Positions 7,852 through 32,801 of a stretch of DNA of 64,000 nt are shown here, piece by piece; position 1 is the first letter of the stretch; each line of letters opens with the position of its first letter. The notes under the pieces were generated by a model. That model saw only the letters and a program-made list of their open reading frames with translations. It made no database searches and was not told the DNA's origin. The stretch spans positions 55,366,001-55,430,000 of the forward strand of contig NC_043004.1 of assembly GCF_006345805.1 (NCBI RefSeq), read 5' to 3'. Position numbers and translations under genes: made by a program. This stretch comes from Octopus sinensis. Its lineage: Eukaryota.

Positions 7852-8219
7852 CTACACTACAGTAGTTGCTCTATCTTTTTGAGTGTTTTTGTCATCTTCA
7901 ATAAGCATTTCTCGTTTTTTCGGCATCGTTAAGCGTAATTTTTCCCAGAATTTGCTAAGTTTGGGACTATCTTGTTCACTGGTCCCTGGCCATTCCAAAT
8001 AGGTGATTGACTTGAGGATGTAAGAAAGGTTTTTGTCCAGTTCTTGTATACTTATGTCACGGAATATAATTGGGATGATCTTTTGACGTTTCTTAAGCAT
8101 TTCCTGGTGAGCAACTTGATATTCCATGCGTGTCCATTCACTGATCACATAATCAGGGGACAGAATTAGGATTGTTCGTCTACTCTTCTCTACAGCATTA
8201 ATTATGTTGTTGCAAATAG
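7852..8219 (-). CDS. EGF-TM-TIR receptor, coding exon 4 (TIR C-terminal part and stop)
   Basis: Acceptor ttttcttgcAG at 8220-8221. Encodes (T)ICNNIINAVEKSRRTILILSPDYVISEWTRMEYQVAHQEMLKKRQKIIPIIF...YLEWP...KFWEKLRLTMP, typical TIR betaC-alphaC through box 3. Confidence 0.92.
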
Positions 8220-8856
8220 CTGCAAGAAAAAAAGGCAAAAATAAGAGTTTTTGTTGTCGCCGTTCTTATTGTTTAGAATCAAGTAAACCCCAATACGGCA
8301 AATCTATTTTATTCTTTTATTCTTTTATTCATTTGATTGCGGCCATGCTGAAGTTCTATCTTAATATGTTTAATAATGGTCCAGCACTGGCCATCCCATA
8401 TTTATTTGCCGCAGATTCTATATGCGTTTTACTCCAACGTTTATTTTAGACGGTACAGTATGATTTGAAGGAACTTTGACTGCTACTTCTACTAGGTGGA
8501 TCGGTCCCACAAATACTGAAGTATTCAGATATGCTAATAAATTAATTGAATTATAATTGAATTATACTCGTTTCGCTGCCGAATATTATGAATTCTGGTC
8601 CACTTTAATAGAATTATGAAATGAGTTCTTTCTGCCAGAAAATGAAGACAGGAAGCAACTAAACGTTTAAAACAACTACTTCTGCTCATGATCAGAGATG
8701 CACATATCGTCAGCCACTAAGGGACATGCTCAACTGGTTAAGGTCAAACAACTGACAAGCAAATCTGTGGTATTGAGCAGAATATTTGCTGTAGCCCATC
8801 TTTTATACCAAGACAAAACAATGTACCTGATTATTATTATTATTATTATTATTATT

Positions 8857-9413
8857 GAGTGAGAAAGCAGTGCATGCCATCAAAGTGACACTGGGGTAAA
8901 ATATACGAAGCCCAATATACCTATCATGACTACCCGTCTGATAAGGGTACACCAGGCACATGCATCACAACCATATGTGCGCGACATGGTGATCTCATAT
9001 CAAGATAAACTGCACATGACCTTGCAGGTGGGGCCCAGTTAGAATTTTCTTCAGGTTGAGTAGCCCATCCCGCTCAAACGGTCCCTGAATAAGGGTTGTT
9101 TAAGGATGTTGAAAAAACCACCCATGCTTCCAGAGGTGAATTATTCAAACCCCAAAGAATCCCTCTCAACACATGGCTATGATGCTCCCCCACTACTTCT
9201 GCTCGTGATCAGAGATGCACATATCGTCAGCCACTAAGGGACATGCTCAACTGGTTAAGGTCAAACAACTGACAAGCAAATCTGTGGTATTGAGCAGAAT
9301 ATTTGCTGTAGCCCATCTTTTATACCAAGACAAAACAACGTACATGATAACACTTCCAATCAGTTAAGATCAGAAGCCATGAGAGCCACTGCCTGGTACT
9401 GCATCAGGATATT
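8857..9413. repeat. ~555-bp (TAA)n-flanked non-coding repeat; partial copy 8675-8828
   Basis: gagtgagaaagcagtgcatgcc...gtactgcatcagg, near-identical to 10894-11451, 11473-11952 and reversed 21470-22025. Confidence 0.9.
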
Positions 9414-9629
9414 TATTATTATTATATTATTATTATTATTATTATTATTATTATTATTATTATTATTATTATTATTATTATTATTGTTATCATTATTATC
9501 ATCATCATCATCATCATTATTATTATTATTATTATTATTATTGTTATTATTATTATTATCATCATCATCATCATTATTATTATTATTATTATTATTATTA
9601 TTATTATTATTATTATTATTATTATTATT

Positions 9630-29328: not shown

Positions 29329-29496
29329 CATGGTCTTCATAATTCTGGAATGTGTAGATTATCTTGAGAATGAACGTGAATCTGTATCTCCACATGACAT
29401 ACACCGACACTGCGAGGACGAAGGACAATAATAATGGAATGGCGAGGAAACCCAAGTAACGCTTGTCCCATTCTTCTACTGTAGTCGGTGGTATTT
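29329..29496 (-). CDS. EGF-TM-TIR receptor, coding exon 2 (transmembrane helix); absent from the ORF track
   Basis: Acceptor tgcAG at 29497-29498, donor GTAAG at 29328. 168 nt encoding (E)[55 protein letters not shown]; in frame with exons 1 and 3. Confidence 0.9.
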
Positions 29497-32248
29497 CTGC
29501 AATGATTACAAGAATAAGGTTTTAGAAATCAACACATTTGTGTAAGTACTATACAGTGAAATCTAGATGAAAGAGTCGTCAGTGTCTGCGCGGAGGAAGT
29601 CTGAAGCTAAGAAATTAAGAGTAGCAAAGACTGTCCAATTGTTGAGAGGCTGGAAAATTGATATTTAGCCTTATATTTCCGTATAGCATAGTGGCTCTTA
29701 GACAGCACGTTGCAAGTGGTATCGACATGCATAGTACTTTTTATAATATAACCGAAGACTTCATAAATGCTTGAGATGGCACATGCCTAGAGGTTAGGAG
29801 TGCTGCATTTACGATCGCAAGATCGTGATTTCAGTTCCTGGGCGGGGTGGTGCGCAGTGCTCTCTTGAGCAAAACTCTTCATCCCATGTTGCTCTACGAT
29901 CACTTCGGCGTCTAACATATGCTACAGATTACACCGGTTCAGCAACATCGGTTTGATAAAGAGAGGATGCTAATGTGAAACACGAACATTTGATCAGTAA
30001 GAATAAATCATTTGGCAGGTTGTTCTACAAGAAATTTCAGAACCGTGTTTTTCTCGGACTTCAGGAGATTGCCTTCACTAATGCTTGAGTATCTTAAAAA
30101 TATCTTTTTATTTATAAAGCCGTTAAACACAAACAAACGCGTGGAAGATGGTTAGGGTACTCGGCCAAAGGTCGTGAGTTCGAGTACACTCAGCTGGCAA
30201 AAATGAGTCGCATCTGTAAACAACCTTGTCACATTCTATGTCATGTCGAGTCTCCATGAAAACTACGTTAAAGGCACACATGTTTGTGGAGTGCTCAATC
30301 ACTTGCACGTTAATTTCACGAGCAGAGAGAGAATAAAATTATACATTGTTATTTGATTCACTATCTGATAGGAGATGCCTTGCCTGTTTCTCCTACATAT
30401 ACCAACTTGTTGCTCCGTTTAACAAATGAAATACGTGTAATGGTGAATAAACAATACTAAAAGGTTTTGATAGGTAATTACTCTATCATGCTATTTTCCA
30501 GTATTTTTCAACACTTACGCATACCTCAAATAATTATAACATCAATATACAATTTTGCAGCACCGGAATTTGCAGATGTTCTTCATAAAGGTTAGCTTGG
30601 AATATAACCCTGTTTACACTACATAATATATGTATTTATACATACGTATATGTACACACAAGCACACACACACACACACACACACACACACACACACACA
30701 CACACACACACACACACACACACACACACACGCAGACACAAACACACGCACGCACATATATCTATAAAATAAAATAAGGACATAATGAAAAAGTGATTAT
30801 ATCATTGGCTTAGCGCATAACAGTGACAGTATAGGTAAAGATTAAAAAAAATTTTTAAACATAATTATAAAATATAATTATAATTAAGGGCTACTGGATA
30901 TGACAAGCGGGATACAATGAAAGTAGATGTCAAATACCCGCAAACCACTCTAAAATGTGTTCTCTCTCTCTCGCTCTCTCTCTCTCTCTCTCTCTCGCTA
31001 TATATATATATATATATATATATATATATATATATATATATATATCCATACATACATACATGCATACATACATACATGCATACATACATACATACATACA
31101 TACATACATACATACATACATACATACATACATATATGCATACATGCGTACATATTGGGGCTCTGGGATATGTAACACACTACTTAAAGTATCAATCTGC
31201 TTAAAGTACCAATCTTTCTCAAAACCAGAAAGGAGAAAACTATTTCGAAGACTACAAATCCAATCTATCACTGGAACGGTAAAAATCTGTGAAACCTTCC
31301 AGAAGTTTATCATCTAAATATATACATACATACATACATACATACATATACATACATATATATGTGTGGCATTGATTTCCGTTTACTGCAATATCTATAT
31401 AGTGAACCAGCAGCAGGTATTATCTGATTGAATATATCTCTGACCCGTGTACTTTTCATATAACATGTACTTTTCATATCACAAGTACGTGTACTTTTCA
31501 TATAACACTCAGCGTGACTCAGTATGACGTTTACAATTACGTCTACAATTCATCCGACCAGTTTCCTGATATATCCATCTCACCATTTCACATAAAAACT
31601 TTGTGCCGACTCGGGGCTTTTGTCCCTTAGATTACACGCCTTGCAGTGTTATTGAATACGAGCCTCATGATTGCAAACGAGATTCTTAATCTGTCAGCCG
31701 TACTGCATCTACTCACACACAGGAAAAGATATGCGTATCTGTATGCATATCTATTTCTTTACCACCCACAAGGGGACAAACACAGAGGGGACAAACAAGG
31801 ACAGACAAAAGGATTAAGTCGATTACATCGACCCCAGTGGGCAACTGGTACTTAATTTATCGACCCCGAAAGGATGAAAGGCAAAGTCGACCTCGGCGGA
31901 ATTTGAACTCACAACGTAACGACAGACGAAATACCGCTAAGCATTTCGCCCGGCGCGCTAACGTTTCTGTCAGCTCGCCGCCTGTATGCATATCCGTGTG
32001 AGTGTGCGTGTGCGTGTGTGCGTGTGTGGGTGCATGTGTGTGTATGTAGTATATGCACATAATCTTCCCTGCAGACGTTGACCACAACTATACAAACAAA
32101 ACAGCAATCTGTTAATCTGACCGATATTAAACGGCAATTGAAACACGTAGGCATTACTTCTTCCTCCCGTCTATACATATCATAAAGTACAATTCAATAT
32201 AAACTGTAATAAGATGTAATGATAATATTTTAAAAGACTTTCACTGAC

Positions 32249-32801
32249 CTTCTTCGGTGCAATTTGAATCTGGCTTATAATGGCCCTCACAGGCACATAT
32301 TTCCTCTCCACGGTGTAGGAAACATTCTCCATGTAAACAGTTGCGGGTACAACCTATATTACACGTCTCTCCAATCCAACCATCATCACATTGACATTTA
32401 GACCTCACATTATTGATTTTCTTACAAGAACCATGAACGCAAACCATTGCGTCGCACATTTCATGATTACATTTTTTTCCTGTATAGCCAGACTCACACT
32501 TGCATTCCATATTGCAACTTTCTGTATCAAATGTGCAGTTGCCGTGATTATGGCATGTGTCTGGCGTGCATTCATTTGTACAACGTTTGGGTGATTTTCT
32601 ATGTTGACAATGTTTTCCATCGACCTCCGGCGGACAGATGCATGCTGCTTTGCATTCACTATTTGGTTTACAGGTTCCTCCATTCTTGCATGGGTCATGA
32701 AACGAGCACACATTATAGGTACATATTGCCGTTTCATTAACAGGGAAACATGCAATAAAAGACAAAGAAAATATTAACAACTTTGCGGTTGACATTTCCA
32801 T
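32249..32801 (-). CDS. EGF-TM-TIR receptor, coding exon 1 (signal peptide and four EGF-like repeats)
   Basis: ATG at 32801 (MEMSTAKLLIFSLSFIACFP); CKNGGTC, CHNHGNC, CVHGSC, CLHGEC with C-x-C-x2-G-aromatic-x-G-x2-C ends; donor GTCAGT at 32248. Candidate upstream acceptors at 32826 and 32849 imply a further 5' UTR exon. Confidence 0.9.

Follow-up and report, generated by a model that had tools for sequence, protein, structure and literature searches.

A 64,000-nucleotide (nt) stretch of the Octopus sinensis genome (the window, positions 1 to 64,000; chromosome record CM016866.1, assembly GCA_006345805.1) carries on its minus strand the gene LOC115215177, whose main product is predicted to be a 410-amino acid (aa) type I membrane protein with an EGF ectodomain outside and a TIR domain inside. 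The gene is modular, the EGF block, the transmembrane segment and the two parts of the TIR domain each lying on their own exon. In the profile searches made here, it appeared as the single cephalopod orthologue of an EGF-TIR family that seems to be confined to Lophotrochozoa. We lean towards reading the protein as a lophotrochozoan EGF-TIR type I receptor that would signal through TIR recruitment of MyD88-type adaptors, the mechanism being proposed by analogy. Innate immune signalling in animals centres on TIR receptors, of which, to our knowledge, functional studies exist only for the LRR-TIR (Toll/TLR) and Ig-TIR (IL-1R) forms; EGF-TIR proteins represent a third ectodomain solution.

Gene structure of LOC115215177

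Joining of the four coding exons gave a coding sequence of 1233 nt, corresponding to 410 aa and a TAG stop, interrupted by three GT-AG introns that were all in phase 1. They are given below in the order of transcription and in window coordinates (window coordinate = 42802 minus the coordinate in L001, the 70-kb locus record of the gene).

Coding exon 1, 32249..32801, minus strand, 553 nt: residues 1-184 plus one base, ATG at 32801-32799; signal peptide and all four EGF-like repeats.
Intron 1, 29497..32248, minus strand, 2752 nt, phase 1, GT..AG: position kept in Argonauta, Haliotis and the annelid Owenia.
Coding exon 2, 29329..29496, minus strand, 168 nt, symmetric 1-1: residues 185-240; short stalk, transmembrane helix, RYR and a juxtamembrane helix ending ...FQNYEDH.
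Intron 2, 24366..29328, minus strand, 4963 nt, phase 1: directly ahead of TIR box 1 (YED./DGKEYDAF); position kept out to Owenia.
Coding exon 3, 24222..24365, minus strand, 144 nt, symmetric 1-1: residues 241-288; N-terminal third of the TIR domain with box 1, helix A, strand B and the BB loop RDFLVGE.
Intron 3, 8220..24221, minus strand, 16002 nt, phase 1: within the BB loop (VGE/T); common to Argonauta and Haliotis, absent in Owenia.
Coding exon 4, 7852..8219, minus strand, 368 nt: residues 289-410 and TAG at 7854-7852; C-terminal two thirds of the TIR domain (helix B to helix E, SEWTRMEY, box 3 KFW) and a 20-aa tail.

The donor contexts of the introns were AAG/GTCAGT, ATG/GTAAGT and AAA/GTAAGT, and all three acceptors consisted of a polypyrimidine tract followed by CAG. 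The translation was 100% identical over all 410 aa to RefSeq XP_029640218.1, annotated as "uncharacterized protein LOC115215177 isoform X1" of Octopus sinensis, and exhaustive exact-match spliced mapping returned this four-exon chain as the sole solution. Because of this identity to the NCBI model and the unique exact-match chain, the splice model was not regarded as a product of chance. The initial annotation, made from the letters of the window, had proposed the exon coordinates, the sizes and phases of the introns and a product of 1233 nt, or 410 aa plus stop; every number was reproduced, and its splice model proved to be that of RefSeq isoform X1.

With the protein and 81 homologues as queries, a tblastn search of the window and of the 70-kb locus detected neither exons beyond the four nor paralogous copies. 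A nested or antisense gene in the introns was considered and ruled out, as the intronic open reading frames (ORFs) were derived only from retrotransposons or microsatellites. Scans of the window for Rfam families and tRNAs found none. At 32848-32850 of the minus strand, an AG preceded by a polypyrimidine tract (ttccttctttcag/ATTTCTC) was observed 47 nt ahead of the ATG, which suggests that coding exon 1 starts at this acceptor-like site and that at least one non-coding 5' exon is located further upstream.

EGF and TIR exons in a single gene

The locus had been proposed to be a single spliced EGF-transmembrane-TIR gene, and this proposal was supported indirectly by comparison with other species. 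The coding exons of Argonauta hians measured 550/168/144/359 nt and those of Haliotis rufescens 844/153/144/647 nt, and the introns of both were in phase 1 and fell at the same residues as in the octopus (...CTE/, YED./DGKEYDAF and VGE/TI). The annelid Owenia shared introns 1 and 2 and lacked the BB-loop intron. The Logan contig L002 from another cephalopod (run SRR20545817; 2455 nt) was intron-free and held an uninterrupted orthologous ORF of 441 aa, which aligned from the signal peptide to the end of the TIR domain with no gap at any of the three exon junctions. This contig must derive from mRNA, because genomic orthologues carry kilobase introns at these junctions. Similar short intron-free contigs were present for other members of the EGF-TIR family.

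The proportion of nonsynonymous differences (pN) against Argonauta was 0.14-0.34, far below the corresponding synonymous proportion (pS, saturated at 0.70-0.80), in every folded region. As synonymous sites were saturated against both Argonauta and a decapodiform transcript, the result is given as pN<<pS only and not as a dN/dS value. The orthologues of O. vulgaris and O. bimaculoides were 99% and 84% identical to the O. sinensis protein. The identity to O. bimaculoides was 76% in the EGF block, 95% in the transmembrane exon, 100% in TIR exon 3 and 86% in exon 4, and the protein encoded by exon 3 was 100% identical in all three octopuses. Judging from these patterns, the EGF-TIR protein is conserved under purifying selection.

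The coding sequence extends over 25 kb, and one of its introns measures 16 kb and is filled with transposon remnants, as could be expected if the EGF and TIR exons came from different genes or if the model were a prediction artefact. However, Argonauta and Haliotis, and in part Owenia, had the same exon order, phases and junction residues, intron-free contigs of other species held the full ORF, and no other gene within the window could own the exons; this explanation is effectively excluded on comparative grounds, and the EGF and TIR exons are taken to form one gene.

Protein architecture

Residues 1-24 form a putative signal peptide, in which a charged n-region (K7) precedes the hydrophobic core (LLIFSLSFIACF; hydrophobic stretch at 8-20) and the c-region is polar. 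The ectodomain of about 160 aa (residues 27-181, from Cys27 to Cys181) contains 28 Cys in the pattern 8+8+6+6, that is, four EGF-like units, two with 8 Cys (27-65 and 74-111) and two of the classical 6-Cys type (116-147 and 151-181). The motif C-x-C-x5-G-x2-C, which we take to be the EGF signature of PROSITE, was present in three of the four units. In the Pfam scan of the 410-aa product all EGF matches were weak, each staying under its gathering score. By sequence, the ectodomain matched the EGF domains of Notch1, DLK1, DLL1 and mussel foot proteins in the PDB at 2e-6 to 1e-3, and in the AlphaFold2 model (mean predicted local distance difference test score, pLDDT, of 78) it consisted of four beta-hairpin units, which Foldseek aligned to EGF4-7 of Notch1. 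The Cys spacing and the PDB and Foldseek matches place EGF-like domains in the same polypeptide as the TIR domain, the feature by which the EGF-TIR class is recognized.

All 28 ectodomain Cys were invariant in seven cephalopod sequences. Three N-glycosylation sequons were found (N22, N88 and N180), and C38-KNGGT-C44 fits the O-fucose consensus as the one such site in the ectodomain. Assignment to the calcium-binding EGF type was rejected, the motif D/N-x-D/N-E/Q-C being absent from all four units.

The transmembrane segment spans residues ~198-220 (23 aa) with a Kyte-Doolittle peak of 2.47, corresponds to a helix at 196-221 in the model and is followed by RYR. It was the sole strong hydrophobic segment besides the signal peptide. 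A conserved juxtamembrane helix encoded by exon 2 lies after RYR. The architecture initially read from the sequence, namely a signal peptide, four EGF-like repeats, a transmembrane helix with RYR and a complete TIR domain, was in agreement with the Pfam TIR match, the Cys units, the hydrophobicity and the AlphaFold2 model.

TIR domain

Residues 245-399 matched the Pfam family PF01582 with an E-value of 1.4e-25 and 90.5 bits against a cutoff of 21.3. The domain is complete, because the match covers positions 2-171 of the 179 in the profile. Box 1 (YDAFISF), box 2 in the BB loop (RDFLVGE), SEWTRMEY and box 3 (KFW) were all recognized, and the AlphaFold2 model showed the canonical beta-alpha fold of TIR domains. 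As in TLRs, a single transmembrane helix is followed by a TIR domain with boxes 1-3, the Pro of box 2 being replaced by Val.

The best sequence matches in the PDB were the TIR domains of TLR1 and TLR2 (2e-22), followed by those of TLR6 (9e-21), IL-1RAcP (4.5e-20), TLR10 (1e-17), SIGIRR (7e-13) and Hydra TRR-2 (2e-11); plant TIRs matched at 7e-8 to 9e-4 and MyD88 at 2e-4. The order given by Foldseek was IL-1RAcPb (TM-score 0.84), TLR1, TLR10, IL-18Rbeta, Hydra TRR-2 (0.78), TLR6 and TLR2, and IL1RAPL1/2 also matched. Scaffold receptor TIRs as a whole gave TM-scores of 0.70-0.84 (SIGIRR 0.73), and RUN1, RPV1 and SARM1 gave 0.54-0.60. Since the nearest sequences and folds were those of receptor TIRs, the domain appears to be a scaffold TIR of the Toll/IL-1-receptor type, and not one of the adaptor or NAD+-cleaving (NADase) type.

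In the family alignments, D246 of box 1, R282, D283 and G287 of the BB loop, E321, and F379 and W380 of box 3 were conserved across the EGF-TIR family and in LRR Tolls. In every cephalopod orthologue (those of Octopus, Argonauta and Acanthosepion and two transcript contigs), Val takes the place of the BB-loop Pro (V286 of the octopus protein), and the Pro was kept in 18 of the 29 family members, including most from bivalves, gastropods, annelids and brachiopods. V286 therefore has the appearance of a change specific to the cephalopod lineage. Mammalian TLR2 and TLR4 require this Pro to signal through MyD88, and we take P681 and P712, respectively, to be their residues corresponding to V286. 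Val or Ala was likewise present at this position in several of the aligned LRR Tolls; the Pro is thus not strictly defining, and V286 does not disqualify the octopus protein.

Distribution of the EGF-TIR family

EGF-TIR was named as a category in the genome analysis of the oyster Crassostrea gigas (PMC4346834), and again in Aplysia californica, among TIR proteins of "as of yet unknown function" (PMC9334734). The Aplysia protein LOC101856027, listed there as EGF-TIR, matched our family profile at 1.1e-109 (match P0095) and aligned with residues 25-392 of the octopus protein at 2e-57, linking the latter by homology to a published member. The label "ecTIR-DC" also occurs in published papers. The initial annotation had described EGF-TIR architectures as mainly molluscan and functionally uncharacterised, which accords with both of these papers and with the profile members, namely molluscs, one annelid and one brachiopod.

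The family profile, built from 29 members, retrieved 147 proteins at E<=1e-30. All named matches at E<=1e-50 came from molluscs (cephalopods, bivalves and gastropods), the annelid Owenia or the brachiopod Lingula. Protostome LRR-bearing Toll/Tollo proteins came next, after a score gap from 188 to 172 bits and below. On this evidence the family is wider than the molluscs and is one of Lophotrochozoa. The search detected only one locus in O. sinensis. Cephalopod members were the shortest in the family, with four EGF units and 406-441 aa against 460-900 aa elsewhere. The automatic NCBI names of relatives and isoforms ("draper", "cell death abnormality protein 1-like", "delta-like protein C", "slit homolog" and "toll-like receptor 4") follow the best-scoring domain and not orthology.

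The literature searched contained no mention of LOC115215177 or its accessions and none of a cephalopod EGF-TIR; one further paper touching on an Octopus sinensis TIR was a TLR review. The protein model itself is not new, as both RefSeq and UniProt contain it, and EGF-TIR has been a named architecture since 2015. The finding thus confirms and refines a known annotation and does not reveal a new kind of system. What is added here is a conserved modular exon structure with counterparts as distant as an annelid, the apparent restriction to Lophotrochozoa, the minimal four-EGF cephalopod form with Val in its BB loop, and the location of the alternative 3' exons of the predicted TIR-less forms.

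Predicted isoforms and extent of the gene

Since each intron is in phase 1 and both internal exons (2 and 3) are symmetric, exon skipping and alternative 3' exons preserve the reading frame. Isoform X2 predicted by NCBI (362 aa) is without exon 3 and hence without the region from box 1 through the BB loop, and the same form is predicted in O. bimaculoides, where a predicted X3 skips exon 2 with the transmembrane segment. In the predicted X3 (337 aa) and X4 (289 aa) of O. sinensis, two alternative exons take the place of exon 4 and of exons 3 and 4, respectively, giving a tail of LSSAQGF...IKQVN and a stop.

Alternative terminal coding exons, L001 51888-51970 and 59892-59957 (stop at 59957), same strand as the gene: flanked by AG/GT sites, 9-17 kb past the left edge of the window.

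If real, X3 and X4 would be membrane-anchored EGF-transmembrane proteins in which the TIR domain is truncated or absent. An AATAAA was observed after the last alternative exon (L001 59892-59957). The called range of the gene, L001 10001-59957, is twice the span of the coding sequence because it takes in these two alternative 3' exons, which lie beyond the window. A neighbouring gene outside the window, on the opposite strand at L001 57864-69957, encodes a 748-aa protein of the carboxylesterase family (PF00135). The two genes are convergent, and the called range of the carboxylesterase-type gene runs over the alternative 3' end of the EGF-TIR gene.

Proposed mechanism and alternatives

In the mechanism that we favor, the EGF ectodomain would bind an extracellular ligand or a membrane partner, and clustering or dimerisation would then draw the TIR domains together. 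By analogy with Toll and IL-1R, the paired TIR domains may nucleate the assembly of a MyD88-type adaptor, which would lead through IRAK and TRAF6 to NF-kB/Rel. The predicted isoforms without box 1 and box 2 (X2), or without most or all of the TIR domain (X3 and X4), could act as non-signalling competitors. Transcripts of MyD88, IRAK and TRAF6 were reported in the haemocytes of O. vulgaris (PMC4199593). The initial annotation had suggested a candidate innate-immune or developmental receptor, and the process served may be immunity, development or neural function.

Several points weigh against this reading. The EGF repeats are generic and allow no ligand prediction, with the individual Pfam EGF matches all under their gathering thresholds. 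The BB-loop Pro of TIR domains that signal through MyD88 is not matched in cephalopods, which have V286 instead. The isoforms of O. sinensis are predictions of NCBI and ENA. The literature searched provided no functional or expression data for LOC115215177 or for any EGF-TIR; the architecture has been conserved in molluscs, in an annelid and in a brachiopod, for none of which that literature reported a test of ligand binding or signalling.

It is unlikely, in our estimation, that the protein serves as a subunit that transduces the signal but has no ligand specificity itself, its EGF ectodomain docking to a separate membrane or secreted protein that binds the ligand, as Hydra TRR does with HyLRR. 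Such a bipartite arrangement has been described in Hydra (PMC6321704), and the TIR domain of Hydra TRR-2 was among the top structural matches. The cephalopod ectodomain is also the shortest in the family, with four EGF units compared to bivalve and gastropod proteins of 460-870 aa, and some family members are nearly bare transmembrane-TIR proteins (P0034 and P0022). These short members may, however, be partial gene models, and the preservation of the 28 Cys and of the repeat number across cephalopods argues that the ectodomain itself is constrained.

A role as a SIGIRR-like negative regulator or decoy of Toll signalling, with the TIR domain sequestering adaptors or receptor TIRs, is considered somewhat more doubtful. 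It would accord with the replacement of Pro by Val in all cephalopod orthologues, with the truncation of the TIR domain in predicted isoforms and with the significant match to the SIGIRR TIR by sequence and by structure (7e-13 and TM-score 0.73). TLR1/2/6 and IL-1RAcP were nevertheless better matches than SIGIRR, the BB loop was otherwise intact and strongly conserved, as were boxes 1 and 3, and Val or Ala also occurs at the Pro position in LRR Tolls.

Another possibility, judged improbable here, is a receptor for cell-cell recognition in development or the nervous system, comparable to the synaptic organisers IL1RAPL and IL-1RAcPb or to neurotrophic Tolls, in which adhesion would be due to the EGF repeats and local signalling to the TIR domain, with no sensing of pathogens. 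The top Foldseek match was indeed the neuronal isoform IL-1RAcPb, with IL1RAPL1/2 matching as well, but function cannot be told from the structural similarity of TIR domains. The EGF repeats resemble those of Notch and Delta and include an O-fucose-type site. The gene is single-copy and highly conserved among octopods, exon 3 being 100% identical in three species, and is not expanded or diversified as immune receptor families usually are (cf. PMC4346834). On the other hand, the EGF region has evolved faster than the TIR domain, with 76% against 86-100% identity to O. bimaculoides, a pattern that also fits ligand-driven divergence.

The idea that the TIR domain is an NAD+-cleaving enzyme like those of SARM1, plants and bacteria, and not a scaffold, is very improbable: E321 (the Glu of SEW-x3-E) is invariant in the family and SARM1, RUN1 and other NADase TIRs were detectable structural matches, but the alignment of E321 with the catalytic Glu is only putative, the same Glu occurred in all six LRR Toll sequences of the alignment and is thus not diagnostic, and the TM-scores of 0.54-0.60 for NADase TIRs compare with 0.70-0.84 for scaffold receptor TIRs.

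A broader and decidedly speculative view may be added, to which we give about as little credence as to the decoy. The family would be an ancient lineage specific to Lophotrochozoa that predates the split of molluscs, annelids and brachiopods, and cephalopods would have retained one minimal, conserved four-EGF gene for a cell-cell or neural recognition receptor and not a pathogen sensor, tuned by frame-preserving exon skipping and by alternative 3' exons that give TIR-less competitors. For work on EGF-TIR receptors the octopus gene offers a practical starting point: it is single-copy and modular, has a small product of 410 aa and clear orthologues, and is predicted to give TIR-defective isoforms.

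Other features of the window

The window has a G+C content of 36% and is rich in microsatellites and remnants of non-long-terminal-repeat (non-LTR) retrotransposons.

Non-LTR retrotransposon in intron 3, 12241-17209, minus strand: ORFs of 391, 663, 136, 166 and 220 aa; RVT_1 at 1e-21 and zf-RVT at 3e-5.
Second non-LTR retrotransposon, upstream of the gene, 45025-48230, plus strand: overlapping frame-shifted ORFs; endonuclease/exonuclease/phosphatase at 9e-8, then reverse transcriptase at 4e-13.
ORF of 654 aa, 60601-62565, plus strand: weak reverse-transcriptase match at 5.6e-8.
Very long microsatellites, 21169-21470, 9413-9629, 13461-13612, 17250-17379 and 29133-29314: (TAA)n of up to 101 copies.

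The element in intron 3 consists of two partial tandem copies, the ORF at 12241-13416 repeating the C-terminal part of that at 13640-15631. Much of the 16-kb length of this intron is due to retrotransposon remnants, and long (TAA)n/(ATT)n microsatellites inflate it further. An (AT)92 array begins about 15 nt downstream of the donor of exon 2. The poly-Ile and poly-Tyr-Ile pseudo-ORFs in the ORF list arise from the long microsatellites.

The 230-aa ORF at 884-1576 of the minus strand has, by eye, the motifs ...ADKG..VV.MN... and YGLPKIHK in common with the N-terminal part of the 654-aa ORF, and a segment at about 7200-7440 of the minus strand, just downstream of the stop of the gene, resembles a fragment of the same element. 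The three regions (60601-62565, 884-1576 and ~7200-7440) probably belong to one dispersed repeat family. About 700 nt upstream of the ATG, at 33503-33898 of the minus strand, a 131-aa ORF contains two to three C2H2-type zinc-finger-like motifs (Pfam 7e-6 to 1e-4, all below the cutoffs), and may be a fragment of a transposon or pseudogene and not belong to the EGF-TIR gene.

Comparison with known systems

Draper/CED-1/MEGF10 proteins are likewise type I membrane proteins with tandem EGF-like repeats that do not bind calcium. Their cytoplasmic tails are of the NPxY/ITAM type, whereas that of the octopus protein is a TIR domain, and the names of this group given to relatives come from EGF similarity only. 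Membership was rejected on the basis of this cytoplasmic region and of a Pfam scan with no EMI match.

Hydra HyTRR-1/2 are TIR receptors without LRRs, and the TIR domain of TRR-2 was a strong match. In the bipartite system of Hydra, TRR (transmembrane-TIR) acts with HyLRR (PMC6321704); the TRRs have almost no ectodomain and depend on this separate LRR protein, unlike the octopus protein with its conserved disulfide-rich EGF ectodomain.

The IL-1R accessory proteins (IL-1RAcP/IL-1RAcPb, IL-18Rbeta, IL1RAPL1/2 and SIGIRR) share the single-pass topology and the cytoplasmic TIR domain, and IL-1RAcPb was the best structural match. Their ectodomains are of the immunoglobulin type, in contrast to the EGF hairpins of the octopus model, and membership in the IL-1R family was rejected, as the Pfam scan detected no Ig family.

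Toll and TLR proteins (protostome Toll/Tollo and human TLR1/2/6/10) have the same type I topology, the nearest TIR domains by sequence and fold, and conserved boxes 1 and 3. The octopus protein differs from them in having EGF-like repeats in place of the LRR ectodomain, no cysteine-knot ligand logic, and a TIR domain split by a phase-1 intron in the BB loop. TLR membership was rejected, no LRR family being found in the Pfam scan even at E<=1.

Compared with the molluscan EGF-TIR proteins, the cephalopod members are the shortest, are apparently single-copy and have Val and not Pro in the BB loop. They have in common with them the signal peptide, EGF repeats, transmembrane segment and TIR domain, with homology running through the EGF, transmembrane, juxtamembrane and TIR regions, the juxtamembrane sequence ...YED-DGK-YDAF and an exon structure common to the octopus and Haliotis.

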